Translations under genes and position numbers: made by a program
Notes under the pieces: generated by a model
Databases searched by the model: none
What the model was told of the DNA's origin: nothing
The model's input: the letters and a program-made list of their open reading frames with translations, nothing else
Assembly (NCBI GenBank): GCA_977017575.1
Contig: CDRNVI010000173.1
Span: 1-64,000, forward strand
DNA: 64,000 nucleotides
Source of the DNA: Paramoeba atlantica
Lineage: Eukaryota; Protista; Discosea
Direction: 5' to 3'
In this document: piece after piece, positions 1-62,911 of the stretch
Numbering within the stretch: position 1 is the first letter of the stretch
How the letters are laid out: each line of letters starts with the position of its first letter

Positions 1-494
1 GAAGAGATTAAATTTGAAGAAAGAAGAACATCAATCGTTTCTGGAATCAAATAATTCATCGAAAGTGCTTCAACGCTTTCACATTCGTTCATTTCTCGAC
101 AAACTGGACATTTCACTCCTTTCAAAGAAGAAAAAGAAGAGGAAGAAGAGGGAGAGGAAGAAGAAGAAGAGGAAGGATTTTGAAGAAGAAAGAGTTTGTT
201 GAGACAAAGAGAACAAAAAGAAAGACCACAACAAGGTAACAACCTTGGTTCTTTTTCCCAACTCATCAGCTCCAAACATATTCCACATTCAAATCTTTTC
301 TTTTTCTCTTCTTCTTCCTTTCTCCTTCTTTTCATCACCTCTTCTTCTCTTTCTCTCTCTTCTCCTTCTTCACTTTGTTGTTCTCTCTTTCCAAGAACAT
401 CCTCATTTCTTCTTTCTCTTTCTTCTTTTTCATCATCATCTTCCAATTCTGTTTCTCCCCCTCCTCTCTTTCTCTTTCCTCTTTTTTCACTCAT
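1..494 (-). CDS. TRIM-NHL paralog copy 0, exon 1 only (basic N-terminus + RING); continues off the window start
   Basis: ATG at 494 on the minus strand (MSEKRGKRKR...). The reverse complement encodes FECGICLELMSWEKEPRLLPCC, poly-Ser, VKCPV and SSNLIS, in the same layout as the other copies. Confidence 0.85.
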   Translation of the reverse strand, partial: MSEKRGKRKRGGGETELEDDDEKEERERRNEDVLGKREQQSEEGEEREREEEVMKRRRKEEEEKKKRFECGICLELMSWEKEPRLLPCCGLSFCSLCLNKLFLLQNPSSSSSSSPSSSSSFSSLKGVKCPVCREMNECESVEALSMNYLIPETIDVLLSSNLIS

Positions 495-860
495 TTTTTG
501 TCTCTCTCTGTGTGGGGAAAAGAGATCAATCAAACAAGAAGAAGAAGAAGAAAAGGGAGTTTAAAAATAGGTGGATGAACCAAAAGAAAAGAAAAGAAAA
601 GAAAAATACAAACATCTCTCAAAAAGACAGGAAAGGACAAAATGGAGGAGAGAGAGGGACGCAAAATCTATGACAACTATCCAAAGACGTCCAATTTTTT
701 CTTGGGTTGTGAAAAAAACAAGAGAGAAGAGAAAGAGAGAGAGAGAAGAAGAAGACTGAGAAGAGGAAGGGATTGAGAAGAAAAGAAAGAGACAGAGAGA
801 GAAAGGTCCCAAACGAAGACACAGAAGTGAGAGAAACAAAAAAGAAAAAAAAAAAGAAGT

Positions 861-904
861 TTTTTTCAGAGGTTTAAACAGTTTTGAATCGTCTTTTCGG
901 GCCC
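861..904 (-). promoter_or_regulatory. Conserved ~44-bp spacer element, copy 1 of 10
   Basis: TTTTTTCAGAGGTTTAAACAGTTTTGAATCGTCTTTTCGGGCCC, between divergent copies 0 and 1. Regulatory function is inferred. Confidence 0.55.
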
Positions 905-1571: not shown

Positions 1572-3821
1572 ATGAGCGAAAATAGAGGAAAGAGAAAGAG
1601 AGGAGAATCAGAATTAGAAACTGAGAAAAAGAGAAAAACCAAAAGAGGAAAGAAAGAGAAAGAAGATCAAACAACAGAGTGTGATGATGTTGTTATAATT
1701 GAAGAAGAAGATGATGATGATGATGAAAGAGAAAGAAGAAGTGAGGAGGTTCTTGGAAAGAGAGAACAACAAAATGAAGAAGGAGAAGAGAGAGAAAGAG
1801 AAGAAGAGGTGATGAAGAGAAGAAGAAAGGAAGAAGAAGAGAAAAAGAAAAGATTTGAATGTGGAATATGTTTGGAGCTGATGAGTTGGGAAAAAGAACC
1901 AAGGTTGTTACCTTGTTGTGCTCTTTCTTTTTGTTCTCTTTGTCTCAACAAACTCTTTCTTCTTCAAAATCCTTCTTCCTCCTCTTCCTCTTCTTCTTTC
2001 TCATATCTTTCTTCCTCTTCCTCTTCCTCTTCTTCTTCTATGAGAGGAGTGAAATGTCCAGTTTGTCGAGAAATGAACGAATGTGAAAGCGTTGAAACAC
2101 TTTCAATGAATTATTTGATTCCAGAAACGATTGATGTTCTTCTTTCTTCAAATTTGATCTCTTTCTCCAATCAATCAGGTTTTTTCTCCATTTTTTTGAA
2201 CTCTCACTTTCTTTCTTTCTTTCCTCTTTTTTTTGAAAGAAAGCTATTTCAAATTGTTGAAAAACATATTTTTTGAACAGGAGATGGTGGATCAGAATGT
2301 GTGAATTTCGAAACGTGTGGAGAACGAACTCAAATGTATTGTTCTGATTGTAAAATGTTTATTTGTGATTCTTGTGATCCATCTCACACTTCAACTATTT
2401 TCACTCAAAATCACAAACGATCTGAAAGAGACGGTGTTGAGGGAGGTGGAAGAAGAAGAAGATTGGAAGAGGAGGGGGTGATGGGAGTGATGGGATTGGA
2501 GAATTTGAAGAAGAGAGAATGTTCAAAACACCCATCTGAAACAATTTGTGGATATTGTTTTCAATGTTCTTCTTTTGTTTGTACTCGTTGTATTCTTGAA
2601 ACACATGATGATCATAATGAGAAAGTGAAATCAATTGAAGAAAGTATTTTGGAGAAGAGGGATGAAGTTGTAAAGATTGGAGATAAATTGGAGAGAAGAT
2701 TGATTTTGATTGAGAGGAAAAGAAAAAGAATTGAAAAAGAAATGAAAGAATTAGAAGAGAAATTAGAAAAGAAAAGAATTGAAAAGAAAGAAATAGAATT
2801 GGAGAAAGAAGATTTGAGAATCAGAAAAGATTCAATTATTCGTTTATCCAACACACCAACAACAACAACAACAACAACTGATTGTGATGTTTCTCTCTTT
2901 TTTGATGATCAACTTTTTTCAACTCTTCTTCAAACTGCAAATGATATTGTTTCTGAAGGAGGTGTTGTTGATTTACCAAAACCAAAGAAAGGAGTGATTT
3001 GTTGTGATGATTCTTTTCGTTTTGTTTCTTCTTTTCCTTTGAAGAATTATCCTTATGGAGTGAGTGTGAACAGTGATGGGAATATATTTATTTGTGAAGG
3101 GTTGGTGAGTGGATTGAAAGTGAGAGATAAAGAAGGAAATGAGATGATTGAATCAACAATTCAGAAAACAATTGATTCACTTCAGTTGGAACCTGTTGAT
3201 GTTTCAATTGGATTGAATGATCAAATTGTTGTTCTTGATTATTCTCAAGATTCTCAGAGAGTTGTAATCTTAAACAAAGAAGGAGAATTGATCAAATCTT
3301 TTGGATCAAAAGGTTCTCAAGATGGTCAGTTTTATGAACCACATGGTGTGGATGTAGATGAAGAAGGTAGAATTATTGTTGTTGACTCTGGAAATGATCG
3401 AATTCAAGTGTTTGATAATGATGGATCTTTTCTTCGTTCTTTTGGTTCAAAAGGTTCTTCTGAAAGTCAATTTAATGAACCAAACAGTGTTGTAGTTGAT
3501 AGAGATGGGAATATTGTTGTTTGTGATACTTGGAATCATCGGATTCAAGTGATGGATATTGAAGGGAATTTTATTCGATTTCTTGGAGGTTCAGGTGATT
3601 CTCAATTCGATTGTCCAAAAGGTGTTGATGTGGATGGGGAAGGTAGAATTGTTGTTTGTGATTCAGAAAATGAAAGAGTGAGTGTGTTTGAGAAAGATGG
3701 AACATTTCTTTTTTCGTTTGGTGAAGATCGCATGAATTATCCTTCTGGGGTTGTTGTTGATTCATTTGGAACAATTATTGTTTCAGATTTTGACAATAAG
3801 TCAATTGAGTTGTGGAAATAA
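1572..3821 (+). CDS. TRIM-NHL paralog copy 1 (RING-Bbox1-Bbox2-coiled coil-6xNHL), ~715 aa
   Basis: Exons 1572-2178 and 2281-3821, with a 102-nt phase-1 GT..AG intron that restores frame. B-box1 CVNFETC..CSDC..CDSC..H..H, B-box2 CSKH..CFQC..CTRC..HDDH, six NHL repeats. Confidence 0.92.
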
Positions 3822-5378: not shown

Positions 5379-7606
5379 ATGAGTGAAAAAAGAGGAAAGA
5401 GAAAAAGAGAAAGAGAAACAGAATTAGAAACTGAGAAAAAGAGAAAAACCAAAGGAGGAAAGAAAGAGAAAGAAGAAGAAGATGTTGTTGTTGAAATTGA
5501 AGATGACAATGATGAAAAAGAACAAAGGGAAAGAAGAAATGAGGATGTTCTTGGAAAGAGAGAACAACAAGCGGGACAAAATGAAGGAGAAGAAGGAGAA
5601 AGAGAAAGAGAAGAAGTGGTGATGAAAAGAAGAAGAAAGGAAGAAGAAGAGAAAAAGAAAAGATTTGAATGTGGAATATGTTTGGAATTGATGAATTGGG
5701 AAAAAGAACCAAGGTTGTTACCTTGTTGTGCTCTTTCTTTTTGTTCTCTTTGCCTCAACAAACTCTTTCTTCTTCAAAATCCTTCTTCTTCTTCTCCTTC
5801 TTCCTCTTCTTCTTCTTCTTCTTGTTCCTCTTTGAAAGGAGTGAAATGTCCAGTTTGTAGAGAAATGAACAAATGTGGAGCGATTGAAACACTTTCGATG
5901 AATTATTTGATTCCAGAAACGATTGATGTTCTTCTTTCTTCAAATTTGATTTCTTTCTCCCACCAAACAGGTTTTCTTTCTGTTTTTTGAGAGAAAGTTA
6001 TTTCAAAATTGAAAAAACATGTTTTTTGAAAAACAAAACAACAGGAGATGGTGGATCAGAATGTGTGAATTTCGAAACGTGTGGAGAACAAACTCGAATG
6101 TATTGTTCCCAATGCAACATGTTTATTTGTGATTCTTGTGATCCATCTCACACTTCTTCTCTTTTCACTCAAAATCACAAACGATCTGAAAGAGATGGTG
6201 TTGAGGGAAGAGGTGGAAGAAGAAGAAGATTGGAAGAGGAGGGAGGGGTGGTGGGAGTGATGGGATTGGAGAATTTGAAGAAGAGAGGATGTTCAAAACA
6301 CCCATCTGAAACAATTTGGGGATATTGTTTTCAATGTTCTTCTTTTGTTTGTGGTTGTTGTATTCTTGAAACACATGATGATCATAGAAAGAAAGTGAAA
6401 TCGATTGAAGAAAGTATTTTGGAGAAGAGAAAGGAAGTTGTAAAGATTGGAGATAAATTGGAGAAAAGATTGATTTTGATTGAAGAAGAAAGAAAAAAGA
6501 TTGAAAAAGAAATGAAAGAATTAGAAGAGAAATTAGAAAAGAAAAGAATTGAAAAGAAAGAAATAGAATTAGAGAAAGAAGATTTGAGAATAAGAAAAGA
6601 TTCAATTATTCGTTTATCCAACACACCAACAACAACAACAACAACAACAACTGATTGTGATGTTTCTCTCTTTTTTGATGATCAACTTTTTTCAACTCTT
6701 CTTCAAACTGCAAATGATATTGTTTTTGAAGGAGGTGTTGTTGGATTACTCAAACCAAAGAAAGGAGTGATTTGTTGTGATGGTGGTGGTGATTCTTTTC
6801 GTTTTGTTTCTTCTTTTCCTTTGGAGAATGTATCTTGTGGAGTGAGTGTGAATAGTGATGGGAATATTTTTATTTGTGAAGATGAGGGTGGATTGAGAGT
6901 GATAGATAAAGAAGGAAATGAGATGATTGAATCAACAATTCAGAAAACAATTGATTCACTTTATTTGGATCCTGTTGATGTTTCAATTGGATTGAATGAT
7001 CAAATTGTTGTTCTTGATTGTTCTCAAGATTCTCGTAGAGTTGTAATATTAAACAAAGAAGGAGAATTGATCAAATCTTTTGGATCTAATGGTTCTGAAG
7101 ATGGTCAGTTTAATAGTTCGTGTGGTGTGGATGTAGATGAAGAAGGTAGAATTATTGTTGCTGATACTTTGAATCATCGAATTCAAGTGTTTGATAATGA
7201 TGGATCTTTTCTTCATTCTTTTGGTTCAGAAGGTTCTTCTGAAAGTCAATTGAATGAACCTCACGGTGTTGTAGTTGATAGAGATGGGAATATTGTTATT
7301 TGTGATACTTGGAATCATCGAATTCAAGTGATGGATATTGAAGGGAATTTTATTCGATGTTTTGGAACAAAAGGTTCAGGTGATTCTCAATTGAACGAGC
7401 CAGAAGGTGTTGATGTTGATGGGGAAGGTAGAATTGTTGTTTGTGATTCAGGAAATGGAAGAGTGAGTGTGTTTGAGAAAGGTGGAACATTTCTTTTTTC
7501 GTTTGGTAAACCTCATGTGGTGAATCCTCTTGGGGTTGTTGTTGATTCATTTGGAACAATTATTGTTTCAGATTATGAGAAAAAGTCAATTGAATTTTGG
7601 AAATAA
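5379..7606 (+). CDS. TRIM-NHL paralog copy 2, ~717 aa
   Basis: Exons 5379-5970 and 6045-7606 (74-nt phase-1 intron); all domains intact. Confidence 0.92.
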
Positions 7607-8940: not shown

Positions 8941-11186
8941 TCAAAATGATTTCCACAATTCAATTGAATTTTTCACATAATCAGAAACAATAATTGTTCC
9001 AAATGAATCAATAACAACCCCATAAGGATCTTCCATGTGAGGTTTACCAAATGAAAAAAGAAATGTTCCATCTTTCTCAAACACACTCATTCTTCCATTT
9101 CCTCCATCACAAACAACAATTCTACCTTCCCCATCCACATCAACACCTCCTGGAGAGTTCAATTGAGAATCACCTGAACCTTCTGTTCCAAAACATCGAA
9201 TAAAATTCCCTTCAATATCCATCACTTGAATCCGATGATTTTTACAATCACAAATAACAATATTCCCATCTCTATCAACTACAACACTCTGAGGTACATT
9301 AAATTGACCATCAGAAGAACCTTTTGAACCAAAAGAACGAAGAAAAGATCCATCATTATCAAACACTTGAATTCGATGATTGTAAGTATCAGCAACAATA
9401 ATTCTACCTTCTTCATCTACATCCACACCACATGGGATATAAAACTGACCATCTTCAGAACCATTTGATCCAAAATAATTGAGCAATTCTCCTTCTTTGT
9501 TTAATATTACAACTCCATAAGAACCTTGAGAACAATCAAGAACAACAATTTGATCATTCAATCCAATTGAAACATCAACAGGTTCCAATTGAAGTGAATC
9601 AATTGTTTTCTGAATTGTTGATTCAATCATCTCATTTCCTTCTTTATCTCTTACTTCCAATCCACCATCCTCTTCGCAAATAAAAATATTCCCATCACTG
9701 TTCACATTCACTCCCAAAGTTCCATTCTTCAAAGGAAAAGAAGAAACAAAACGAAAAGAATCACCACCACCATCACAACAAATCACTCCTTTCTTTGGTT
9801 TGAGTAATCCATCAACAACACCTCCTTCAGAAACAATATCATTTGCAGTTTGAAGAAGAGTTGAAAAAAGTTGATCATCAAAAAAGAGAGAAACATCACA
9901 ATCAGTTGTTGTTGTTGTTGTTGGTGTGTTGGATAAACGAATAATTGAATCTTTTCTTATTCTCAAATCTTCTTTCTCTAATTCTATTTCTTTCTTTTCA
10001 ATTCTTTTCTTTTCTAATTTCTCTTCTAATTCTTTCATTTCTTTTTCAATTCTTTTTCTTTCTTTTTCAATCAAAATCAATCTTTTCTCCAATCTATCTC
10101 CAATCTTTACAACTTCATTCCTTTTCTCCAAAATACTTTCTTCAATCGATTTCACTTTCTTATTGTGTTGCACGTGTGTTTGAAGAATACAACAAACACA
10201 AACAAAAGAAGAACATTGAAAACAATATCCACAGATTGTTTCAGATGGGTGTTTTGAACATTCTCTCTTCTTCAAATTCTCCAATCCCATCACTCCCATC
10301 ACCACCACCCCCTCCTCTTCCAATCTTCTTCTTCTTCCACCTCCCTCAACACCATCTCTTTCAGATCGTTTGTGATTTCGAGTGAAAATAGAAGAAGTGT
10401 GAGATGGATCACAAGAATCACAAATAAACATGTTGCATTGGGAACAATACATTTGAGTTTGTTCTCCACATGTTTCGAAATTCGCACATTCTGATCCACC
10501 ATCTCCTGTTGTTTTGTTTTTCAAAAAACATGTTTTTTCAATTTTTAAATAACTTTCTCACAATAAAAAGAAGAAAGAAAACCTGGTTGGTGGGAGAAAG
10601 AAATCAAATTTGAAGAAAGAAGAACATCAATCGTTTCTGGAATCAAATAATTCATCGAAAGTGTTTCAATCGCTTCACATTTGTTCACTTCTCTACAAAC
10701 TGGACATTTCACTCCTTTCAAAGAGGAACAAGAAGAAGAAGAGGAAGAGGAAGAAGGAGAAGAGGAAGAAGGATTTTGAAGAAGAAAGAGTTTGTTGAGA
10801 CAAAGAGTACAAAAAGAAAGACCACAACAAGGTAACAACCTTGGTTCTTTTTCCCAACTCATCAATTCCAAACATATTCCACATTCAAATCTTTTCTTTT
10901 TCTCTTCTTCTTCTTTTCTTCTTCTTTTCATCACCTTTTCTTTTCTTTCTCTTTCTCTTTCTTCCTCTCCTTCTCCTTCATTTTGTCCCACTTGTTGTTC
11001 TCTCTTTCCAAGAACATCCTCATTTCTTCTTTTTCTTTCTTCTTTTTCATCATCTTCTTCTTCTTCAATTACAACAACAACATCAACATCATTTTCTTTC
11101 TCTTTTTTTCCTCTTTTGGTTTTTCTCTTTTTCTCAGTTTCTAATTCTGATTCTCCTCTCTTTCTCTTTCCTCTATTTTCGCTCAT
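8941..11186 (-). CDS. TRIM-NHL paralog copy 3, ~722 aa
   Basis: Exons 11186-10583 and 10505-8941 (77-nt phase-1 intron); all domains intact. Confidence 0.92.
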
Positions 11187-12529: not shown

Positions 12530-14817
12530 ATGAGTGAAAAAAGAGGAAAGAGAAAGAGAGGAGGGGGAGAAACAGAATTGGAAATGGAGAAAAAGAGAAA
12601 AACCAAAAGAGGAAAGAAAGAGGAGGAAGGACCTCCAACAGATCGTGAGGATGATGTTGTTGTGATTAAGAAAGATGATGATGAAAAAGAAGAAAGAGAA
12701 AGAAGAAATGAGGATGTTCTTGGAAAGAGAGAACAACAAAATGAAGAAGGAGAACAGAGAGAAAGAGAAGAAGAGATGAGGAAAAGAAGAAGAAAGGAAG
12801 AAGAAGAGAAAAAGAAAAGATTTGAATGTGGAATATGTTTGGAGTTGATGAGTTGGGAAAAAGAACCAAGGTTGTTACCTTGTTGTGGTTTTTCTTTTTG
12901 TACTCTTTGTCTCAGCAATCTCTTTCTTCTTCAAAATCCTTCCTCTTCTTCTTTCTTATCTCTTTCTTCCTCTTCCTCTTCCTCTTCTTCTTCCCCATCT
13001 CCATCTCCCTCTTCTCTGAGAGGAGTGAAATGTCCAGTGTGTCGAGAAATGAACGAATGTGAAGCGATTGAAACACTTTCGATGAATTATTTGATTCCAG
13101 AAACGATTGATGTTCTTCTTTCTTCAAATTTGATCTCTTTCTCCAATCAATCAGGTTTTTATCTCCATTTTTTTGAACTTCCTCTCTTTCTTTCCTCTCT
13201 TTTCTTTCTTTCTTTCCTCTTTTTTTGAAAGAAAGCTATTTTTAAGTTGAAAAACATATCTTTTGAACAGGAGATGGTGGATCAGAATGTGTAAATTTCG
13301 AAACATGTGGAGAACGAACTCAAATGTATTGTTCCAAATGTGACATGTTTATTTGTGATTCTTGTGATCCATCTCACACTTCAACTATTTTCACTCAAAA
13401 TCACAAACGATCTGAAAGAGATGGTGTTGAGGGAGGAGGTGGAAGAAGAAGATTGGAAGAGGAGGGGGTGGTGGGAGTGATGGGATTGGAGAATTTGAAG
13501 AAGAGAGAATGTTCAAAACACCCATCTGAAACAATTTGGGGATATTGTTTTCAATGTTCTTCTTTTGTTTGTACTCGTTGTATTCTTGAAATACATGATG
13601 ATCACAGAAAGAAAGTGAAATCAATTGAAGAAAGTATTTTGGAGAAAAGAAATGAAGTTGTGAGGATTGGAGATAAATTGGAGAAAAGATTGATTTTGAT
13701 TGAAAAAGAAAGAAAAAGAATTGAAAAAGAAATGAAAGAATTAGAAGAGAAATTAGAAAAGAAAAGAATTGAAAAGAAAGAAATAGAATTAGAGAAAGAA
13801 GATTTGAGAATTAGAAAAGATTCAATTATTCGTTTATCCAACACACCAACAACAACAACAACAACTGATTGTGATGTTTCTCTCTTTTTTGATGATCAAC
13901 TTTTTTCAACTCTTCTTCAAACTGCAAATGATATTGTTTTTGAAGGAGGTGTTGTTGGATTACTCAAACCAAAGAAAGGAGTGATTTGTTGTGATGGTGG
14001 TGGTGATTCTTTCCATTTTGTTTCTTCTTTTCCTTTGAAGAATGTATCTTATGGAGTGAGTGTGAACAGTGATGGGAATATTTTTGTTTGTGAAGAGGGT
14101 GGATTGAGAGTGAGAGATAAAGAAGGAAATGAGATGATTGAATCAACAATTCAGAAAACAATTGACTCACTTCATTTGGAACCTATTGATGTTTCAATTG
14201 GATTGGATGATCAAATTGTTGTTCTTGATTGGTCTCAAGATTCTCAGAGTGTTGTAATCTTAAACAAAGAAGGAGAATTGATCAACTCTTTTGGATCAAT
14301 TGGTTCTGAAGATGGTCAGTTTTATGGACCATGTGGTGTGGATGTAGATGAAGAAGGTAGAATTATTGTTGCTGATACTTACAACCACCGAATTCAAGTG
14401 TTTGATAAAGATGGGTCTTTTCTTCGTTCTTTTGGTTCTTTTGGTTCTTCTGAAAGTCAATTTAATCATCCAAACCGTGTTGTAGTTGATGGAGATGGGA
14501 ATATTGTTGTTTGTGATACTTGGAATCATCGGATTCAAGTGATGGATATTGAAGGGAATTTTATTCGATGTTTTGGAACATTTGGTTCAGGTGATTCTCA
14601 ATTTGATTGTCCAAAAGATGTTGAAGTTGCTGGGGAAGGTAGAATTGTTGTTTGTGATTCAAGAAATGGAAGAGTGAGTGTGTTTGAGAAAGATGGAACA
14701 TTTCTTTTTTCGTTTGGTCAACATCACATGAAGTGTCCTAATGGGGTTGTTATTGATTCATTTGGAACAATTATTGTTTCTGATTGGGAGAAGAAGTCAA
14801 TTGAATTTTGGAAATAA
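12530..14817 (+). CDS. TRIM-NHL paralog copy 4, ~723 aa
   Basis: Exons 12530-13154 and 13271-14817 (116-nt phase-1 intron). Confidence 0.92.
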
Positions 14818-25239: not shown

Positions 25240-25625
25240 TCTCCTGCCAAAAAAAAAAATGAGCAATTTGCAAAAGTTCAAAAAGGAAGAAAAACAAGAC
25301 TTTCTTCAATGAGTAAGAAAAGATGAAAAAAACACCACAATACTGGAATCAAGAAGAGAAGCAGAGAAAAACGCTCTGAGATGGAAAGAAAATTGAGAAA
25401 AAGAAGGTGAAAAAGAAAATGGGAGAAAATACAAACCACCACAAAAAGGAGAGAGAGAGAAGAGAGAAGAGAGAGAGACCCTCCAAACAAAATGTGAGGT
25501 ACAAATGAAAACAAGAGAGTCTGGGAGAGGGAGGGAAGAAGGAAAGAAGAAGAAGGGATTGAGGAGAAGAGAAAGAGAGAGAAAGACACAGAAGAGAGAA
25601 GAGGAAAACAAAAAAAAAAAAAGGT

Positions 25626-31389: not shown

Positions 31390-31421
<32 letters not shown>

Positions 31422-36067: not shown

Positions 36068-36098
<31 letters not shown>

Positions 36099-41416: not shown

Positions 41417-41878
41417 TTTTGTCTCTCTGTGTGCGAAAAGAGATAAATCAACAACAAAAAAAGAAGAAAAAGCAACAATGAACAATTTTTAAAAAAGAAA
41501 AGAAAAGAAAAATATTTTTCCTCAAATTGAAAAAGAAAAGACACAAAAAGAACAAACAAAACACCTCAAAAAGAAATAGGGAAAAAATGAAAAAGAAAAA
41601 GAAAAAAAAGAAAAAACAAACCAAAACTATCCCAACCACACAGAGAGAGAGAGAGAGAGACTGCTGCCAAAACAAAACACAAAAATGAAATGAGGAGCAA
41701 TGGAGAAAACCAATTCCCAATCAAAGAGAGAGGAGAGAGAGAAGAGAGAGAGGGATGGAGAAGAGGAAGACAACCGAAAAATGAGAGAAGAGAGAGAGAG
41801 AAAGGTCCAAAACGAAGACACAGGCAACTGAAGAGGTACAGAAAAGGAAACAGAAAAAAACACCAAAGAAAAAAGAAA

Positions 41879-49169: not shown

Positions 49170-51447
49170 TTATTTCCACAATTCAATTGACTTTTTCTTC
49201 CAATCAGAAACAATCATTGTTCCAAATGAATCAACAACAATCCCAGTCGGACACTTCATGTGATGTTGACCAAACGAAAAAAGAAATGTTCCATCTTTCT
49301 CAAACACACTCACTTTTTCATTTCCTCGATCACAAACAACAATTCTACCTTCCCCATCCACATCAACACCTTTTGGACAATCGAATTGAGAATCATCTGA
49401 ACCATATGTTCCAAAACATCGAATAAAATTCCCTTCAATATCCATCACTTGAATCCGATGATTCAAACGATCAGAAATAACAATATTCCCATCTCCATCA
49501 ACTCCAACACTGTTTGGTTCATTAAATAGACCTTCAGAAGAACCAAATGAACCAAAAGAACAAAGAAAAGATCCATCATTATCAAACACTTGAATTCGAT
49601 GATTGCAAGTATCAGCGACAATAATTCGACCTTCTTCATCCACATCCACACCCCATGGTTCATCAAACTGACCATCTTCATCACCAAATGATCCAAAAGA
49701 TTTGATCAATTCTCCTTCTTTGCGTAGGACTACAACTCTATGAGAATCTTGAGACCAATCAAGAACAACAATTTGATCATTCAATCCAATTGAAACATCA
49801 ACAGGATCCAACTGAAGTGAATCAATTGTTTTCTGAATTGTTGATTCAATCATCTCATTTCCTTCTTTATCTATCACTCTCAATCCATCATCTTCACAAA
49901 CAAAAATATTCCCATCACTGTTCACACTCACTCCATGAGGTTGATTCTTCAAAGGAAAAGAAGAAACAAAACGAAAAGAATCACCACCACCATCACAACA
50001 AATCACTCCTTTCTTTCCAAATCCAACAATCCCTCCTTCAGAGACAATATCAGTTGCAGTTTGAAGAAGAGTTGAAAAAAGTTGATCATCAAAAAAGAGA
50101 GAAACATCACAATCAGTTGTTGTTGTTGTTGTTGGTGTGTTGGATAAACGAATAATTGAATCTTTTCTGATTCTCAAATCTTCTTTCTCTAATTCTATTT
50201 CTTTCTTTTCAATTCTTTTCTTTTCTAATTTCTCTTCTAATTCTTTCATTTCTTTTTCAATTCTTTTTCTTTTCCTCTCAATCAAAATCAATCTTTTCTC
50301 CAATTTATCTCCAATCCTCACAACTTCATTTCTCTTCTCCAAAATACTTTCTTCAATTGATTTCACTTTCTTTCTGTGATCATCATGAGTTTCAAGAATA
50401 CAACGAGTACAAACAAAAGAAGAACATTGAAAACAAAATCCACAAATTGTTTCAGCTGGGTGTTTTGAACATTCTCTCTTCTTCAAATTCTCCAATCCCA
50501 CTCTCACCACCCCCTCCTCTTCCAATCTTCTTCTTCTTCCACCTCCCCCAACACCATCTCTTTCAGATCGTTTGTGATTTCGAGAGAAAATAGTTGAAGT
50601 GTGAGATGGATCACAAGAATCACAAATAAACATGTTGCAATCAGAACAATACATTTGAGTTTGTTCTCCACACATTTCGAAATTCACACATTCTGATCCA
50701 CCATCTCCTGTTTAAAATATATGTTTTTCAACAATTTGAAATAGCTTTTTTTCAAAAAAGAGGAAAGGGAAAGAGAGGGAAGAAAGAGAGGAAGTTCAAA
50801 AAATGGAAATAAAAACCTGATTGATTGGAGAAAGAGATCAAATTTGAAGAAAGAAGAACATCAATCGTTTCTGGAATCAAATAATTCATCGAAAGTGTTT
50901 CAACACTTTCACATTCGTTCATTTCTCGACACACTGGACATTTCACTCCTTTCAAAGAGGAAGGAGAGGAAGGAGAGGGGGAGGGAGAAGAAGAAGAAGA
51001 GGAAGAATTTTGAAGAAGAAAGAGTTTGTTGAGACAAGGAAAACAAAAAGAAAGACCACAACAAGGTAACAACCTTGGTTCTTTTTCCCAATTCATCAAC
51101 TCCAAACAGATTCCACATTCAAATCTTTTCTTTTTCTCTTCTTCCTTTCTTCTTCTCTTCATCACCACTTCTTCTCTTTCTCTTTCTCCTTCTTCTTCTC
51201 CTTCATTTTGTCCCACTTGTTGTTCTCTCTTTCCAAGAACATCCTCACTTCTTCTTCTTTCTCTTTGTTCTCTTTCATCAACATCATCTTCAATCACAAC
51301 AACATCAACATCTTCTTCTTCAATCACAACAACATCATCATCGTCAAGAGGAATTTGTTCTTTCTTTCCTCTTTTTAATTTTTTCCCCTCCTCCTCACTC
51401 CCACTTCTCACCACTTCTCTCTTTCTCTTTCCTCTTTGATCACTCAT
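49170..51447 (-). CDS. TRIM-NHL paralog copy 16, ~722 aa
   Basis: Exons 51447-50817 and 50707-49170 (109-nt phase-1 intron). Confidence 0.92.
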
Positions 51448-52572: not shown

Positions 52573-54895
52573 ATGGGTGAAAATAGAGGAAAGAGAAAGA
52601 GAGGAGAAACAGAATTGGAAACTGAGAAAAAGAAAAAAACCAAAAGAGGAAAGAAAGAGAAAGAAGAAGAACAAACAACAAATCATGGTGATGATGTTGT
52701 TGTAATTGAAGAAGAAGAAGATGGTGATGATGAAATAAGAGAAAGAAGAAGTGAGGATGTTCTTGGAAAGAGAGAACAACAAAATGAAGGAGAAAGAGAA
52801 AGAGAAGAAGAAGAGGTGATGAAGAGAAGAAGAAAGGAAGAAGAAGAGAAAAAGAAAAGATTTGAATGTGGAATATGTTTGGAGTTGATGAGTTGGGAAA
52901 AAGAACCAAGGTTGTTACCTTGTTGTGGTCTTTCTTTTTGTTCTCTTTGTCTCAACAAACTCTTCCTTCTTCAAAATCCTTCCTCTTTCTCTTCCCCATC
53001 TCCCCCTCCTTCTTCTTCTTCCTCTCCTTCTCCCTCTTCTTCCTCAACATCTTCTTCCTCATCACCTTCTTCTTTCTCATCTCTCTCTTCTCCCTCTTCT
53101 TCTTCCTCTTCCTCTTTGAAAGGAGTGAAATGTCCAGTTTGTAGAGAAATGAACGAATGTGAAAGCGTTGAATCACTTTCGATGAATTATTTGATTCCAG
53201 AAACGATTGATGTTCTTCTTTCTTCAAATTTGATCTCTTTCTCCAATCAATCAGGTTTTTTCTCCCTTTTTTTGAACTTCCTCTCTTTCTTTCCTCTCTT
53301 TTCTTTGTTGAGAAAAAGTTATTTGAAGTTGTTGAAAAATATATTAAATATTTTTGAAAAAACAGGAGATGGTGGAATGAATTTCGAAACGTGTGGAGAA
53401 CAAACTCAAATGTTTTGTTCTGATTGTAAAATGTTTATTTGTGATTCTTGTGATCCATCTCACACTTCAACTCTTTTCTCTCAAAATCACAAACGATCTG
53501 AAAGAGATGGTGTTGAGGGAGGTGGAAGAAGAAGAAGATTGGAAGAGGAGGAGGAGGGGGTGGTGGGAGTGATGGGATTGGAGAATTTGAAGAAGAGAGA
53601 ATGTTCAAAACACCCATCTGAAACAATTTGTGGATATTGTTTTCAATGTTCTTCTTTTGTTTGTACTCATTGTATTCTTGAAACACATAACAAACACAAT
53701 GAGAAAGTGAAATCAATTGAAGAAAGTATTTTGGAGAAAAGGAATGAAGTTGTAAAGATTGGAGAGAAGATTGATTGTAATTGAAAGGAAAAGAAATAGA
53801 ATTGAAAAAGAAATGAAAGAATTAGAAGAGAAATTAGAAAAGAAAAGAATTGAAAAGAAAGAAATAGAATTGGAGAAAGAAGATTTGAGAATCAGAAAAG
53901 ATTCAATCATTCATTTATCCAACACACCAACAACAACAACAACAACTGATTGTGATGTTTCTCTCTTTTTTGATGATCAACTTTTTTCAACTTTTCTTCA
54001 AACTGCAAATGATATTGTTTCTGAAGGAGTTGTTGTTGGATTATTCTCAAAACCAAAGAAAGGAGTGATTTGTTGTGATGGTGGTGGTGATTTGATTCGA
54101 GTTGTTTCTTCTTTTCCTTTAGAGAATGTACCTTTTGGAATGAGTGTGAACAGTGATGGGAATATTTTTATTTGCGAAGGTGACCAATTGAGTGTGAGAG
54201 ATAAAGAAGGAAATGAGATTGGTTCAATTCAAAAAACAATTGATTCACTTCAGTTGGAACCTGTTGATGTTTCAATTGGATTGGATGATCAAATTGTTGT
54301 TCTTGATCATTCTCAAGATTCTCGGAGAGTTGTAATCTTAAACAAAGAAGGAGAATTGATCAAATCTTTTGGATCAAATGGTTCTGAAGATGGTCAGTTT
54401 AATTCTCCATATGGTGTGGATGTGGATGAAGAAGGTAGAATTATTGTTGTTGATACTTTGAATCATCGAATTCAAGTGTTTGATAATGATGGATCTTTTC
54501 TTTGTTCTTTTGGTTCATTTGGTTCTTCTGAAGGTCAATTTCATGGACCAAACAATGTTGTAGTTGATGGAGATGGGAATATTATTATTTCTGATACTTT
54601 CAATCATCGGATTCAAGTGATGGATATTGAAGGGAATTTTATTCGATGTTTTGGAACATTTGGTTCAGGTGATTCTCAATTGCGTTATCCAAGAGGTGTT
54701 GATGTTGATGGGAAAGGTAGAATTGTTGTTTGTGAAGAAGGAAACAGAAGAGTGAGTGTGTTTGAGAAAGATGGAACATTTCTTTTTTCATTTGGTAAAC
54801 ATCACATGAAAGATCCTTATGGGATTGTTATTGATTCATTTGGAACAATTATTATTTCTGATTGGGAGAAGAAGTCGATTGAATTTTGGAAATAA
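52573..54895 (+). pseudogene. TRIM-NHL copy 17, frameshifted at the start of the coiled coil
   Basis: Intron 53255-53365 (111 nt). An 11-nt deletion near 53758 (ATTGGAGATAAATTGGAG to ATTGGAG) gives a stop at 53784. The coiled coil-NHL ORF 53759..54895 is otherwise intact. Confidence 0.85.
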
Positions 54896-55938: not shown

Positions 55939-57507
55939 TCAAAATGATTTCCAAAATTCAATTGACTTATTCTCATAATCTGAAACAATAATTGTTCCAA
56001 ATGAATCAATAACAACCCCATTAGGATCTCTCATATGATGTTGACCAAACGAAAAAAGAAATGTTCCATCTTTCTCAAACACACTCACTCTTCTATTTCC
56101 TGTATCACAAACAAAAATTCTACCTTCCCCATCCACATCAACACTTCCCGGACAATCGAATTGAGAATCACCTGAACCTTCTGTTCCAAAACATCGAATA
56201 AAATTCCCTTCAATATCCATCACTTGAATCCGATGATTCCCCACATCAGAAATAACAATATTCCCATCTCTATCAACTACAACACCATAAGGTTGATCAA
56301 ATTGACCTTCAGAAAAACCAAAAGAACCAAAAGAACGAAGAGAAGATCCATCATTATCAAACACTTGAATTCGATCATTTCCAGAGTCAGCAACAATAAT
56401 TCGACCTTCTTCATCCACATCCACACCACATGGTCGGTGAAACTGACCATCTTCAGAACCACTTGATACAAAAGATTTGATCAATTCTCCTTCTTCGTTT
56501 AAGATTACAACTCGATAACAATCTTGAGAATGATCAAGAACAACAATTTGATCATTCAATCCAATTGAAACATCAACAGGTATCAACTGAAGTGAATCAA
56601 TTGTTTTCTGAATTGTTGATTCAATCATCTCATTTCCTTCTTTATCTCTCACTTTCAATCCACCCTCACCTTCACAAATAAAAATATTCCCATCACTGTT
56701 CACACTCACTCCATAAGGTTGATTCTTCAAAGGAAAAGAAGAAACAACACGAATCGAATCACCACCACCATCACAACAAATCACTCCTTTCTTTGGTTTT
56801 GAGAATAATCCAACAACAACTCCTTCAGAAACAATATCAGTTGCAGTTTGAAGAAGAGTTGAAAAAAGTTGATCATCAAAAAAGAGAGAAACATCACAAT
56901 CAGTTGTTGTTGTTGTTGGTGTGTTGGATAAACGAATGATTGAATCTTTTCTGATTCTCAAATCTTCTTTCTCTAATTCTATTTCTTTCTTTTCAATTCT
57001 TTTCTTTTCTAATTTCTCTTCTAATTCTTTCATTTCTTCTTCAATCTTTTTTCTTTTCTTTTCTATCAAAATCAATCTTTTCTCCAATTTATCTCCAATC
57101 TTTACAACTTCACTCCTTTTCTCCAAAATACTTTCTTCAATTGATTTCACTTTCTCATTATGATCATCATGTGTTTCAAGAATACAACGAGTACAAACAA
57201 AAGAAGAACATTGAAAACAATATCCACAGATTGTTTCAGATGGGTGTTTTGAACATTCTCTTTTCTTCAAATTCTCCAATCCCATCACTCCCACCACCCC
57301 CTCCTCCTCCAATCTTCTTCTTCTTCCACCTCTTCCCTCAACACCATCTCTTTCAGATCGTTTGTGATTTCGAGTGAAAATGTTTGAGGTGTGAGATGGA
57401 TCACAAGAATCACAAATAAACATTTTACAATCAGAACAAAACATTCGAGTTTGTTCTCCACACGTTTCGAAATTCGCACATTCTGATCCATCTCCTGTTG
57501 TTTTGTT
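55939..57507 (-). pseudogene. TRIM-NHL copy 18: exon 2 intact, exon 1 (RING) and promoter missing
   Basis: Exon 2 runs 57494-55939, preceded only by the intron's last 13 nt (AACAAAACAACAG). It then abuts copy 19. Confidence 0.85.
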
Positions 57508-57563
57508 ACCTTCTATATTGTGGTGATGAACAACAAAATGAAGGAGAAAGAGAAGAAGAGGTG

Positions 57564-59647
57564 ATGAAAAGAAGAAGAAAGGAAGAAGAAGAGAAAAAGA
57601 AAAGATTTGAATGTGGAATCTGTTTGGAGTTAATGAATTGGGAAAAAGAACCAAGGTTGTTACCTTGTTGTGGTCTTTCTTTTTGTACTCTTTGTCTTAC
57701 CAAACTCTTTCTTCTTCAAAATCCTTCTCCTTCTTCTTCCTCTTCTTCTTCTTCTCTTTCTCCTTCTCCTTCTCCTTCTCCCTCTTCTTCTTCTTCCTCT
57801 TCTTCTTCTTCTCTTTCTCCTTCTCCCTCTCCCTCTCCTTGTTTCTCTTCTTCTTCCTCTTCTTCCTCCTCTCCTTCTTTGAAAGGAGTGAAATGTCCAG
57901 TTTGTAGAGAAATGAACGAATGTGAAAGCGTTGAAACACTTTCGATGAATTATTTGATTCCAGAAACGATTGATGTTCTTCTTTCTTCAAATTTGATCTC
58001 TTTCTCCAATCAACCAGGTTTTTTTCTCCACTTTGGAACTCTCACTTTCTTTCCTCTTTCCTTTCTTTCTTCCTTGAAAAACATAATTTTGAAAAAGAAA
58101 CAACAGGAGATGGTGGATCAAAATGTGTAAATTTCGAAACGTGTGGAGAACGAACTCAAATGTATTGTTCTGCTTGCAACATGTTTATTTGTGATTCTTG
58201 TGATCCATCTCACACTTCAACTATTTTCACTCAAAATCACAAACGATCTGAAAGAGATGGTGTTGAGGGAGGTGGAAGAAGAAAAAGATTGGAAGAGGAG
58301 GGAGGGGTGGTGGGAGTGGGATTAGAGAATTTGAAGAAGAGAGAATGTTCAAAACACCCATCTGAAACAATTTGTGGATTTTGTTTTCAATGTTCTTCTT
58401 TTGTTTGTACTCGTTGTATTCTTGGTACACATGATGATCACAATAAGAAAGTGAAATCAATTGAAGAAAGTATTTTAGAGAAAAGGAATGAAGTTGTAAA
58501 GATTGGAGATAAATTGGAGAAAAGATTGATTTTGATTGAAAAGAAAAGAAAAAGAATTGAAGAAGAAATGAAAGAATTAGAAGAGAAATTAGAAAAGAAA
58601 AGAATTGAAAAGAAAGAAATAGAATTAGAGAAAGAAGATTTGAGAATCAGAAAAGATTCAATCATTCGTTTATCCAACACACCAACAACAACAACAACAA
58701 CTGATTGTGATGTTTCTCTCTTTTTTGATGATCAACTTTTTTCAACTCTTCTTCAAACTGCAACTGATATTGTTTCTGAAGGAGGTGTTGTTGGATTACT
58801 CAAACCAAAGAAAGGAGTGATTTGTTGTGATGGTGGTGGTGATTCAATTCGTTTTGTTTCTTCATTTCCTTTGACAAAAGGAACTTTGGGAGTGAGTGTG
58901 AACAGTGATGGGAATATTTTTATTTGTGAAGATGACGGATTGAGGGTGAGAGATAAAGAAGGAAATGAGATTGGTTCAATTCAGAAAACAATTGATTCAT
59001 TTGAGTTGGAACCTGTTGATGTTTCAATTGGATTGAATGATCAAATTGTTGTTATTGATTGGTCTTCTTATCGAGTTGTAATCTTAAACAAAGAAGGAGA
59101 ATTGATCAAATCTTTTGGATCAAAAGGTTCTGAAGATAGTCAGTTTGATGATCCAAATGGTGTGGATGTAGATGAAGCAGGTCGAATTATTGTTGCTGAT
59201 ACTGACAACCACCGAATTCAAGTGTTTGATAATGATGGATCTTTTCTTCATTCTTTTGGTTCAAAAGGTTCTTCTGATGGTCAATTTAATCAACCAAATA
59301 GTGTTGTAGTTGATGGAGATGGGAATATTGTTGTTTGTGATTCTGGAAATGATCGGATTCAAGTGATGGATATTGAAGGGAATTTTATTCGATGTTTTGG
59401 AACAAAAGGTTCAGGTCCTTCTCAATTAAACGAGCCACAAGGTGTTGATGTGGATGGGGAAGGTAGAATTTTTGTTTGTGATACAGGAAACAGAAGAGTG
59501 AGTGTGTTTGAGAAAGATGGAACATTTCTCTTTTCGTTTGGTAAACATCGCATGGAAGATCCTTTTGGGGTTGTTATTGATTCATTTGGAACAATTATTG
59601 TTTCTGATTGGGAGAAGAAGTCAATTGAATTGTGGAAATCGTTTTGA
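57564..59647 (+). CDS. TRIM-NHL copy 19, N-terminally truncated (~664 aa if started at the internal ATG 57564)
   Basis: Homology begins abruptly at ~57528 (EQQNEGE). Exons 57564-58017 and 58107-59647 (89-nt intron). The normal ATG, leader and spacer are deleted, so expression is uncertain. Confidence 0.65.
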
Positions 59648-60760
59648 AGAGAGGAGGAAGAAAGGGTTTGTTTTTTTTTCATTTTCTTTTCTCTTGATTT
59701 TTATTTTTTTTTTCACTGGGACTTTGTTTTTTCTTCTTTCTTTTTTCTTTTTCTTGATTTCATTTGTTTTTTTTTTCAATTATTTTATTCCTCTCCTCCT
59801 CTTCCTTTTAGTCTCTGGGCGCTCTTTTTGTTCCCAACACATCTTCTTCAATTTCGATTCGATACTTTTCTTTGTGTGTTGTATTATGTTGTGGATGTTC
59901 TCTCTTTTTTCCTATTTTGTTTTCTCTTCAAATTTTGGAGGTATTTTTTTCCTCTTTGCTTTGTTTTCTTGATTTGTTTTTATTTTTTTTCTTTTTAATT
60001 TTTTTTTTGAGAATTTACTTCTGATCTTTTTTTTGTTTGTGTGAACAGAAAAATAGATCTTCCTATGAGTCTTCTCCTCTCTTTATGTTTTGTTTTGTGT
60101 GCGTTAGATGGATCAACTTTATTGGCTCTTTTGTGTAAAAAAAAGACCTCCTCTCTCTCCTTCCTTTCTCTTGTGTTGTGTTGTGTTGTGAAATTCTGTC
60201 TTCTTTCTCCTTTTCTTTTCGATGTTTTTTGTTTTTTTTTTTGTTCCAAATGCCTCTTCCCTCTCCTCACTTCACTCCTTTCTGTTTCTCTTTCTTTCAT
60301 TTGTTTTGATTTTTGGGTGGATTTCTCAGTTCTTCATCCTTTTTGTGGAATAATACTTTGGTTTTTTTTGGTTGATTAAATGATTCAAATTTCTTTTCAA
60401 TTCTTTCCTTTTCTTTTTCCATTTTTCTCTCATTAAAAAAGCATTGAGGATCTTCATTCAACAAAAAGTCTACAAAAACACAAAATTTGCAAAACAGAGA
60501 AGAGAAGAAGACAGAATCTAACACAATCACAAAAGAGAGGATTTGAGGAGAAAGTCTGTTTTTTTTTCACACAAAAGAATAAAAAAAAATTCTTTGAAGT
60601 TGATCATCTCAACACAAAAGAGAAGAGAACAGAAAGAGAGGTCCCAAAGTGAGAATTCAACAACAAACAAAAAAGATCATCAGTGATTTTCTCAAAAAAA
60701 AAAACCACCAAAAAAAGCACAACAAAACCAAAAGAGAAAATAAATTCAACAAAAAACAAA

Positions 60761-62911
60761 TTAGTTGTTCCATAATTCAATGGACCAGGTATCAAAATCT
60801 AAAACAAGAATTGATCCAAATGAATCAATAACAACCCTAGTAGGGTTCTCCATGTAACCTTTACCAAACGAAAAAAGAAATGTTCCATCTTTCTCAAACA
60901 CACTCACCCTTTTGTTTACTTCTTCACAAACAACAATTCTACCTTCTCCATCCACATCAACACTTAGTGGACCATTGATTCGAGAATCACGTGAACCTTT
61001 TCTTCCAAAACATCGAATAAAATTCCCTTCAATATCCATCACTTGAATCCGGTCATTCCCAGAATCACAAACAACAATATTTCCATCTCTGTCAACTCCA
61101 ACACCGTTTGGTTGATTGAATTGACCTTCAGAAGAACCTTTCGAACCAAAAGAACGAAGAAAAGATCCATCATTATCAAACACTTGAATTCGATCATTCA
61201 AAGTATCAGCGACAATAATTCGACCTTCTTCATCCACATCCACACCACCTGGTTCATCAAACTGACCATCTTCATCACCATCTGATCCAAAAGATTTGAT
61301 CAATTCTCCTTCTTCGTTTAAGATTACAACTCGAAAAGAATCTTGAGACCAATCAAGAACAACAATTTGATCATTCAATCCAATTGAAACATCAATAGGT
61401 TTCAACTGAAGTGAATCAATTGTTTTCTGAATTGTTGATTCAATCATCTCATTTCCTTCTTTATCTCTCACTCTCAATCAATCACCTTCACAAACAAAAA
61501 TATTCCCATCACTGTTCACACTCATTCCCCAAGGTCGATTCTTCAAAGGAAAAGAAGAAACAACACAAAAAGAATCACCACCACCATCACAACAAATCAC
61601 TCCTTTCTTTCGAAACCCAACTCCTCCTTCGAAAACAATATCATTTGCAGTTTGAAGAAGAGTTGAAAAAAGTTGATCATCAAAAAAAAGAGAAACATCA
61701 CAATCAGTTGTTGTTGTTGTTGTTGGTGTGTTGGATAAACGAATAATTGAATCTTTTCTGATTCTTAAATCTTCTTTCTCCAATTCTATTTCTTTCTTTT
61801 CAATTCTTTTCTTTTCTAATTTATCTTCTAATTCTTTCATTTCTTCTTCAATCTTTTTTCTTTCTTCCTCAATCACAATCAATCTTTTTTCCAATTTATC
61901 TCCTATCTTCACAACTTCATTTCTCTTCTCTAAAATACTTTCTTCAATCGATTTCACTTTCTTTCTGTGATCATCATGCGTCCCAAGAATACAACAAACA
62001 CAAACAAAAGAAGAACATTGAAAACAATATCCACTGATTGTTTCAGATGGGTGTTTTGAACATTCTCTCTTCTTCAATTTCTCTAATCCCACCACCCCCA
62101 CCTCCAATCTTCTTCTTCCACCTCCCTCAACACCATCTCTTTCAGATCGTTTGTGATTTCGAGTGAAAATGTTTGAAGTGTGAGATGGATCACAAGAATC
62201 ACAATAAACATATCACATTTGGAACAAAACATTTGAGTTCGTTCTCCACACGTTCCAAAATTGGCACATTCCATTCCTCCATCTCCTATTTTGGTTTCTT
62301 TTTCATCAATTCAAGAGAGAAGGAAGGTTGACAAGAAAAGAGAGAAAAATTAAGAAAAGTGAAAAAAAACTTGATTGATTGGAGAAAGAGAGCAAATTTG
62401 AAGAAAGAAGAACATCAATCGTTTCTGGAATCAAATAATTCATCGAAAGTGTTTCAATCGTTTCACATTCGTTCATTTCTCTACACACTGGACATTTCAC
62501 TCCTTTCTTCTTCTTTTCAGTTTGTAATGAAGATGAGCATGAAGAGGAAGAGGAAGAAGAAGAAGAAGGATTTTGATGATGAAAGAGATTGTTGAGACAA
62601 AGAGAGCAAAAAGAAAGACCACAACAAGGTAACAACCTTGGTTCTTTTTCCCAACTCATTAACTCCAAACATATTCCACATTCAAATCTTTTCTTTTTCT
62701 CTTCTTCTTCTTTCTCTCTTCTTCTCTTTATTCTCTCTCCTTCTTCTCTCTCTTTTCTTTGTTGTTCTTGATCTTCTATTTCTTGTTCTTCTCCAATATC
62801 ACTTTCATCATCATCCTTAGTTTGTTCTTTTGTTTTTCGTTTATCCTTCTTCTTCTCACTTTTCACAATCTCTATTCCTCCTCTCTTTTTCTCTCCTTTT
62901 CCTTCACTCAT
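60761..62911 (-). pseudogene. TRIM-NHL copy 20, with a frameshift and a nonsense codon
   Basis: Exon 1 is 62911-62371 and exon 2 starts at 62285 (85-nt intron). A 1-nt deletion near 62203 falls in B-box1 (TTTATTGTGAT versus TTTATTTGTGAT). In-frame TGA at 61480-61478 in NHL blade 1. Confidence 0.85.

Follow-up and report, generated by a model that had tools for sequence, protein, structure and literature searches.

Can the NHL β-propeller, known in a few conserved developmental regulators that bind RNA, serve as the variable module of a TRIM family, a role so far held by PRY/SPRY in vertebrate hosts? The question is raised by a 64,000-nucleotide stretch of Paramoeba atlantica DNA (contig CDRNVI010000173.1, assembly GCA_977017575.1; here called the window), part of a compact, protist-like genome, in which copies of one TRIM-NHL gene follow one another on both strands. 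An earlier note, made from the sequence alone, had read these genes as a variable-specificity system of recognition and ubiquitination. Having followed up that proposal computationally, we judge its recognition part to be the best explanation and give a probability of roughly 55% to a birth-and-death TRIM-NHL array whose diversified top faces recognize targets for a common effector made of RING, B-boxes, and coiled coil (RBCC). The E3 part stands less firmly, as a predicted activity of a RING that has lost its canonical His ligand.

TRIM-NHL architecture of the array

Pfam matched the NHL repeats at 73 to 116 bits, above threshold, and two stretches to zf-B_box at 28 to 38 bits (cutoff, 24.1), the first box being matched by ANCHR-like_BBOX as well. 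There was no Pfam match to a SPRY/PRY (B30.2) domain; the C-terminal domain is NHL, and a filamin domain is absent from the architecture. The AlphaFold2 model of one intact copy (c13) is a six-bladed propeller of 23 strands with a predicted local distance difference test score (pLDDT) above 90 in NHL, preceded by a coiled coil modeled as a continuous helix at residues 369 to 440 (block pLDDT, 75 to 93) and then a helix at 460 to 476. The best Foldseek matches in the PDB were the NHL domains of Thin/TRIM32, TRIM71/LIN-41, TRIM2, and TRIM3, followed by Brat, Mei-P26, and NHL-2. Template modeling (TM) scores by the target were 0.80 to 0.87, with E values of 1e-27 to 1e-22 and 27 to 34% identity for Thin/TRIM32, TRIM71, and TRIM2/3.

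At the other end of the protein, a profile of 22 RING exons found the RINGs of TRIM2 (8a38) and TRIM32 (5fey) as its best matches among PDB sequences (E, ∼1e-6), and the match spans both zinc-binding halves, the CPVC half included, together with the following helix. A structure model of the RING exon by itself was discarded (pLDDT, 48). The profiles and the predicted fold establish homology with class VII TRIM-NHL proteins, because both protein ends, RING and NHL, match the same animal subfamily; the TRIM-NHL architecture named in the earlier note is thereby borne out.

The RING zinc-ligand motif reads PCCGLSFC in every array copy and also in a 53%-identical relative (P0077), with Leu in place of His and a Cys inserted beside the third ligand. 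Since the motif is invariant among copies, it is maintained. A 52%-identical protein of the same assembly (P0082; L011 10001-12073) has PCGHSFC instead, and its RING, a canonical C3HC4 one, scores above threshold with several Pfam RING models; TRIM2 has C-L-H. The gene for P0082 sits among ordinary genes (Arf, SHQ1-like), and the protein may be the ancestral, non-expanded form of the family.

Between RING zinc ligands six and seven of the array copies lies a poly-Ser (Ser/Pro) tract of ∼17 to 60 residues (e.g., 40920-40985 on the minus strand and 57700-57900 on the plus strand). Its length is highly variable, and it behaves as a coding microsatellite.

Variation and probable selection on the propeller

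Structural classes were set a priori from the strand order (a to d in each blade) of the c13 model, before variability was inspected. The assignment of loops to the two faces was taken from Loedige et al. (PMC4015489), with b-c and d-a loops at the top and a-b and c-d loops at the bottom. Among 28 intact genes (13 from the window and 15 from other contigs), the 74 top-loop positions had a mean column entropy of 1.20 bits, compared with 0.41 for strands, 0.16 for the 50 positions in bottom loops, and 0.33 for the B-boxes and coiled coil. With 61 family members, the means were 1.64 bits for the top and 0.50 bits for the bottom, and entropy exceeded 2 bits at 28 of 74 top positions and at none of the 50 bottom positions (Mann-Whitney p = 3e-10). 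The few highly variable positions classed as strand are the residue after the conserved Pro that starts strand a, i.e., the rim of the top face. The variable residues are thus neither scattered nor buried, and they cluster on one face, as proposed; this is the face with which LIN-41 and Brat bind RNA, and in Brat it is the ligand face (PMC4015489).

The remainder of the protein is uniform to a degree that fits the near-invariant scaffold described earlier: the coiled-coil segment quoted in that description is identical in all 13 intact copies, and the quoted NHL strand motifs are invariant or nearly so. Columns with 5 to 8 different residues among the 13 sequences are flanked by invariant columns, and every listed loop variant was recovered (NYPY, NVSC, NGTL, NHPR, NEPF, NQPH, NRPW, DCPK, and SYPQ among others). 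All 28 top faces are unique, and variants of separate loops assort independently (adjusted mutual information, ∼0). The top-loop charge (K+R minus D+E over 74 positions, a crude count rather than electrostatics) ranges from −12 to +7 among the 28 paralogs, with a mean of −2.9; this count does not describe the conserved, positively charged, RNA-binding top face of animal TRIM-NHL proteins (PMC4015489). Because charge varies among paralogs and the variable positions are rich in aromatic residues, the top faces look more like protein- or mixed-ligand surfaces than like a common RNA platform.

The paralogs are fine-grained mosaics with gene conversion tracts tens of bases long. The gene tree is star-like and poorly supported, and incompatibility affects 61% of informative-site pairs, at all distances and with synonymous-only pairs included. 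The pairwise homoplasy index (PHI) gave p = 0.001 only at windows of ≤30 nucleotides; at the usual 100-nucleotide window it was not significant (p = 0.24). When the second exons of the 13 intact window copies are aligned, synonymous divergence ranges from 0.005 to 0.3 across 15-codon windows and is near nil (0.005 to 0.007) at, e.g., codons 316 to 330 and 436 to 450, a heterogeneity far above Poisson noise. Homogenization by conversion, or nucleotide-level constraint, is very uneven along the gene. Maximum likelihood (ML) estimates of omega are 0.29 for the B-boxes and coiled coil, 0.29 for bottom loops, and 0.48 for strands; from these low values and the uneven synonymous divergence, it follows that the scaffold is kept uniform by constraint plus concerted evolution.

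Mosaicism of this kind bears directly on tests for diversifying selection. We used our own GY94-F3x4 likelihood code, which reproduces the IQ-TREE M0 likelihood exactly, and compared a nonparametric omega distribution restricted to ≤1 with an unrestricted one. For 13 genes, twice the log-likelihood difference was 239 on a single tree, 107 on ten segment trees, and 28 with a per-site synonymous rate; for 28 genes, it was 315, and 86 with a per-site synonymous rate. The single-tree and 10-segment-tree figures were rejected, as were the accompanying lists of 27 to 47 “selected” sites, because recombining neutral simulations mimic them. These simulations comprised 28 sequences with omega ≤1 everywhere (30% neutral) and a switch of genealogy every 1, 3, 5, or 10 codons. 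The 44 recombining runs gave likelihood ratio test (LRT) values of 52 to 202 (mean, 75 to 104) and 8 to 61 false sites at a posterior of >0.95, compared with LRT values of 0 to 9 without recombination, where the test was well behaved. Passed through the same segment-tree pipeline, the real data gave an LRT of 462, above all 44 null runs and ∼10 standard deviations over their mean. The global selection signal therefore survives the recombination control. The check proposed in the earlier note, by codeml M7 versus M8 or by MEME/FEL, would be misleading here, because gene conversion alone gives LRT values up to ∼200 and 8 to 61 false sites; its global question is probably to be answered in the affirmative, but its site lists are unusable.

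More generally, in paralog arrays with short-tract conversion, site models on one tree or on 50-codon segment trees give LRT values of 50 to 200, and dozens of falsely selected sites, under strict neutrality. Standard site models thus report strong “positive selection” from recombination alone in such arrays, and other array findings deserve the same control.

A comparison that uses no tree led to the same result. Diversity at codon positions 1 and 2 of the 74 top-loop codons is 0.236, against 0.077 at 72 four-fold sites, a ratio of 3.06. A null that treats all 74 codons as neutral under the same codon model gave a ratio of 1.75 ± 0.27, with a maximum of 2.53 in 140 runs that covered two scales of recombination as well as a star genealogy. 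It is a very generous null, since in reality 21 of the 74 top-loop codons are nearly invariant. Sites with diversity of >0.6 make up 12.2% of the observed total, which is above every null run. Nucleotide diversity at the NHL codons that vary most is 0.44 at position 1, 0.44 at position 2, and 0.30 at position 3, in agreement with the changes at codon positions 1 and 2 that had been noticed earlier, and the suspected nonsynonymous excess at variable sites is upheld against a fully neutral, recombination-aware null. Diversifying selection quite probably acts on the top face as a whole.

Several points weigh against reading the array as a recognition repertoire. One-third of the window copies are dead. 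Pfam RING models match the array RING at an E value of 3.6e-5 but below the gathering threshold (24.4 versus 27.3 bits), and the array copies lack the canonical C3HC4 ligand set. With the His zinc ligand replaced and the RING below the Pfam threshold, ligase activity in the expanded clade is uncertain. Individual site calls are untrustworthy, the 42 “selected” sites in the real data lying inside the null range; their enrichment in top loops (Fisher p = 8.5e-5) shows location and does not separate selection from relaxed constraint. For top loops as a class, ML omega is 0.76 with a synonymous rate of their own that is doubled, not different from 1; the NG86 estimate is 1.4 (confidence interval, 0.96 to 2.06). 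The simulations, in turn, assume GY94-F3x4 mutation and coalescent genealogies, perhaps unlike the real process.

The class-wide omega of 0.76 and the 7 pseudogenes among 21 copies would suit top loops that are simply an unconstrained, drifting surface on a protein otherwise held uniform by conversion and purifying selection, with dN/dS above 1 arising as an artifact of recombination and an AT-biased codon model; so would the finding that recombination alone produces large LRT values and false sites and that the neutral diversity ratio is already 1.75 rather than 1. We consider this distinctly unlikely. The observed ratio exceeds all 140 runs in which every top codon was neutral, even though 21 of the 74 hardly vary, and the LRT exceeds all 44 null runs. 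The composition of the variable sites is also far from mutational equilibrium: at the 28 high-entropy top sites, Trp is enriched 8.4-fold over the neutral equilibrium, Cys 2.4-fold, Lys 2.3-fold, Tyr 2.0-fold, and His 1.9-fold, and Val, Leu, Ile, Ala, Met, Pro, and Thr are depleted to 0- to 0.33-fold (Val, Leu, Ile, and Ala, 0.1- to 0.24-fold). Intact copies, moreover, retain long open frames and transcription. A different possibility is that the variation is created by programmed diversification, either targeted hypermutation or templated patch conversion from fragments and pseudogenes. The extreme mosaicism, with linkage decaying within ∼30 nucleotides, the independent assortment of loop variants, and the truncated copies interspersed in the array are all compatible with it. 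Among pairs sharing an amino acid, synonymous diversity is indeed somewhat up at hypervariable codons (0.142, compared with 0.106 at other top-loop codons and 0.085 to 0.113 elsewhere). This rise is at most 1.7-fold, against more than 4-fold for nonsynonymous diversity at the variable codons. Because synonymous diversity is only mildly raised, local hypermutation cannot explain the four-fold excess of replacement diversity, and a mild rise of this kind is expected at sites linked to targets of diversifying or balancing selection. No repeat, template, or enzyme signature was seen, and we regard programmed diversification as highly improbable.

Housekeeping regulators are normally conserved and single copy, and rapid birth and death with many pseudogenes is typical of conflict genes. 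These considerations, and a top-loop charge that is on average negative and widely spread where the top faces of animal TRIM-NHL proteins are all positive, make it unlikely that the array serves endogenous regulation rather than defense, with paralogs binding different cellular RNAs or proteins or acting in mating, kin recognition, or allorecognition. In favor of such a role, the characterized TRIM-NHL proteins all act through their top face in post-transcriptional or developmental regulation (PMC4015489; PDB complexes), the closest hypervariable-face propeller analog, HNWD of Podospora, is an allorecognition system (PMC2873952), and the variable sites have an excess of aromatic and basic residues.

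The repertoire reading, which we prefer, starts from a birth-and-death tandem array of an expressed multigene family with at least ∼100 members in the genome. Each protein combines a basic N terminus resembling a nuclear localization signal, a RING of the TRIM2/TRIM32 type, two B-boxes with a coiled coil of ∼70 residues, and a six-bladed NHL propeller. Purifying selection and very short-tract conversion keep the scaffold (RING, B-boxes, coiled coil, β-strands, and bottom loops) uniform while the βd-βa and βb-βc loops diversify. Every intact copy has its own top face, in which Trp, Tyr, His, Cys, and charged residues abound and the net charge varies. The top face would then be a diversified ligand-binding surface. 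The coiled coil of TRIM proteins makes an antiparallel dimer, and the RBCC effector would dimerize or assemble and probably ubiquitinate or sequester the bound target. The likeliest arena would be genetic conflict with intracellular parasites, viruses, or mobile elements, or self/nonself discrimination.

A bolder version of the repertoire reading is tentative and, in our estimate, somewhat unlikely. It holds that an intracellular variable-receptor system evolved independently in a non-animal eukaryote, with more than 100 TRIM-NHL genes, paratope-like top faces rich in Trp and Tyr, and loops shuffled by conversion, pseudogene fragments included, and with a constant RBCC (perhaps with a noncanonical RING) that disposes of parasite, virus, or transposon products. 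If it were true, the TRIM-NHL architecture would not be confined to animals. Were diverse targets found to be bound, the NHL propeller would be a new scaffold among natural variable binders, beside Ig, LRR/VLR, PRY/SPRY, and the WD40 of fungal NLRs; the array would be a case study of conversion that holds a scaffold constant while shuffling loop variants; and the question would arise whether TRIM-NHL is older than animals or was transferred.

Array content, expression, and family size

Queried with one full-length copy, tblastn located 21 copies of this gene, distributed over both strands, within positions 3 to 62911 of the window, which as a whole has 34% G+C. Frame-by-frame inspection sorted the copies into intact and broken. 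The B-box-to-NHL exon is intact in 13 of the 21, and 12 of these 13 have a RING exon as well. Eleven genes are complete (c2, c3, c4, c5, c6, c7, c9, c10, c12, c13, and c17), and seven copies are broken or truncated (c8, c11, c14, c15, c16, c18, and c21). The figure of 21 TRIM-NHL paralogs given in the earlier note is therefore correct for copies and their span, but it includes fragments and pseudogenes, and 13 NHL domains are intact. The copies and the intron of the reference gene are as follows.

c1, 3-494, minus strand: RING exon only, with ATG and RING motif present (tblastn); the remainder lies beyond the left window edge
c2, 1572-3821, plus strand: intact TRIM-NHL gene with RING exon, intron, and B-box-coiled coil-NHL exon at 2304-3821 (Pfam)
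c3, 5379-7606, plus strand: intact; the coding sequence of exon 2 starts at 6068
c4, 8941-11186, minus strand: intact
c5, 12530-14817, plus strand: intact
c6, 15990-18295, minus strand: intact
c7, 20277-22586, plus strand: intact
c8, 23174-25305, minus strand: broken and divergent (59 to 68% identity); frame change at ∼23731-23935; start codon not clear
c9, 26075-28338, plus strand: intact
c10, 30955-33189, plus strand: intact; most divergent (67% identity); intron open in frame
c11, 33656-34564, minus strand: 3′ fragment with NHL blades only; in-frame stop
c12, 35641-37868, plus strand: intact; 16-residue deletion in the pre-NHL linker; gene covered by contigs of the RNA run
c13, 39107-41416, minus strand: intact reference gene and source of the structure model; 769 amino acids with the intron read through
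c13 intron, 40668-40793, minus strand: 126 nucleotides, GT..AG, phase 1, between the RING exon and the B-box exon
c14, 42586-43513, plus strand: truncated beyond the first B-box region; tail-to-tail with c15
c15, 43497-45195, minus strand: truncated inside NHL blade 2 at the c14 junction
c16, 46903-48379, plus strand: truncated within NHL blades 1-2
c17, 49170-51447, minus strand: intact; identical to database protein P0001
c18, 52573-54895, plus strand: full length; frame change in the coiled coil at ∼53756-53775
c19, 55939-57507, minus strand: B-box-coiled coil-NHL exon intact, without a RING exon; head-to-head with c20
c20, 57564-59647, plus strand: RING and NHL intact, without the basic N-terminal extension
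c21, 60761-62911, minus strand: divergent; one frame change and one in-frame stop

The truncated ends of c14 (plus strand) and c15 (minus strand) meet tail-to-tail at 43497-43513, where their alignments overlap by 17 nucleotides. At 57507-57564, c19 (minus strand) and c20 (plus strand) stand head-to-head, as if a single rearrangement had deleted both 5′ ends; c19, if expressed, would give a RING-less B-box-coiled coil-NHL protein. The array is broken once, at 28983-30765, where two unrelated multi-exon genes intervene: on the plus strand, a divergent 14-3-3-like gene (67 bits to Pfam 14-3-3 in its last exon), and on the minus strand, a LUC7-like gene with at least three short exons. No tRNA or Rfam matches were found within the window.

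Exon 1 encodes a Lys/Arg-rich basic N terminus, an acidic stretch, and the RING, and exon 2 encodes the two B-boxes, coiled coil, a poly-Thr linker, and the NHL domain. The Lys/Arg clusters of the N terminus look like a nuclear localization signal. The c13 intron was predicted from sequence as CAG/GTTTTT...ACAG/GA (slashes mark the exon boundaries), and its donor, CAG/GTTTT, is kept in every copy, as CAA/GTTTT in two. Evidence of expression comes from one small RNA-like public run (X5). In a contig of this run, position 40667 is directly followed by 40794 (minus strand, GT..AG ends), and depth is zero over the 1.3-kb spacer between c12 and c13 and nonzero over genes. Based on the splice junction, the gene-only depth, and the conserved donor, we conclude that the genes are transcribed and spliced as modeled, the evidence being direct for c13 or for a paralog that shares at least 95% identity with it. 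Upstream of the genes, a long pyrimidine tract followed by CACAG ∼10 nucleotides before the ATG is kept among copies (e.g., 41417-41470, minus strand), a pattern that would be compatible with a trans-splice acceptor.

A search of 5.8 billion proteins found ∼100 open reading frames with 45 to 100% identity, all from a single ENA assembly and spread over dozens of its contigs. The genome-wide count called for earlier thus stands at ∼100 or more further members on other contigs of the same assembly. Outside it, similarity was confined to the NHL level: NHL proteins of bacteria and TRIM71 of animals matched part of the protein at 24 to 42% identity. Seven more contigs of the assembly were fetched, and each bears a TRIM-NHL array of its own. 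Summed word depth over conserved gene segments is 100 to 400 times that of unique spacer in three probably genomic runs, a poor measure that nevertheless fits a family of ∼100 members. A search of viral contigs found no relative of the family, and a giant-virus or other viral origin was rejected on that ground.

Genes neighboring arrays on various contigs include 14-3-3-like, LUC7-like, Ank, arrestin, Arf, CLU-like, and copine genes, some of them split by introns. The genome has close-packed genes, short introns, and frequent low-complexity tracts of Ser, Thr, and Lys/Glu. For a CLU-like neighbor of one family member, the nearest named sequences are amoebozoan (Pelomyxa and Balamuthia, at ∼35% identity), in a search whose length filter left out full-length CLU proteins; the same neighbor resembles a mostly euglenozoan Atlas cluster with a score of 0.83, which is a lead only. 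A second 14-3-3-like gene adjoins another TRIM-NHL array (contig L007, 2648-3157), and the presence of 14-3-3-like genes beside two arrays suggests segmental duplication.

Comparison with known systems

The animal class VII TRIM-NHL proteins (TRIM2, TRIM3, TRIM32/Thin, TRIM71/LIN-41, Brat, Mei-P26, and NHL-2) share with the array proteins the same order of RING, B-box(es), coiled coil, and NHL. This subfamily has been described as animal-only (PMC3503706), with 3 to 5 conserved genes per animal genome (PMC4015489). The family described here differs in having at least ∼100 genes in tandem arrays, a top face that is hypervariable rather than conserved and basic, a replaced RING His, and no filamin domain.

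Expansions of NHL-type TRIMs exist in animals. Protein language model neighbors of the array proteins include clusters of 50 to 250 B-box and NHL proteins, mostly from Mollusca and also from echinoderms and brachiopods (compared by features only, unaligned). These “TRIM2-like” clusters, unlike the array, come from animals with large, intron-rich genes. TRIM genes are among the oyster loci tied to herpesvirus survival (PMC9437489). A literature search found no published analysis of hypervariability on the NHL face; Entamoeba invadens was rejected as a known case, since the paper concerned merely lists B-box and NHL Pfam counts.

Expanded ligase families of other folds offer a looser parallel. 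The F-box and MATH-BTB proteins of Caenorhabditis form large families of cullin-ligase adaptors rather than single-chain TRIMs; their substrate-binding part is reportedly under positive selection, and the families have been proposed to target pathogen proteins. Nematode F-box genes are known as expanded, fast-evolving E3 specificity subunits (PMC8120010).

The Podospora anserina HNWD genes (het-d, het-e, het-r) have a WD40 propeller kept uniform by concerted evolution and recombination, with diversified specificity positions (PMC2873952). They share with the array a β-propeller recognition domain, a scaffold conserved through recombination, and diversification at specificity positions. They differ in that the effector is NACHT/STAND rather than RBCC, diversity comes from intragenic shuffling of WD repeats, and allorecognition has been shown by genetics.

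The parallel with class IV TRIMs extends to both the effector and the mode of evolution. Diversified TRIMs are a familiar means by which germline-encoded genes provide innate recognition of pathogens. In TRIM5alpha and the fish ftr (finTRIM), btr, and hltr genes, positive selection acts on the B30.2 loops, a result that required a control for recombination among copies (PMC3137616). TRIM5alpha/TRIM22, finTRIM, btr, and hltr share with the array the RBCC effector, a variable C-terminal module, clustered genes, and birth and death. On our side, 21 copies lie in 63 kb, 7 of them broken, with arrays on at least seven other contigs, and selection on surface loops is seen for the top face as a whole (3.06 versus a null maximum of 2.53; LRT of 462 versus 202) rather than site by site. 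The class IV variable module is the PRY/SPRY β-sandwich of vertebrates, with antiviral roles demonstrated or strongly suspected, whereas here it is NHL, with a putative role in recognition. The logic of a common RBCC joined to a variable recognition domain is thus that of TRIM5 and finTRIM; what is new is NHL as the variable module.

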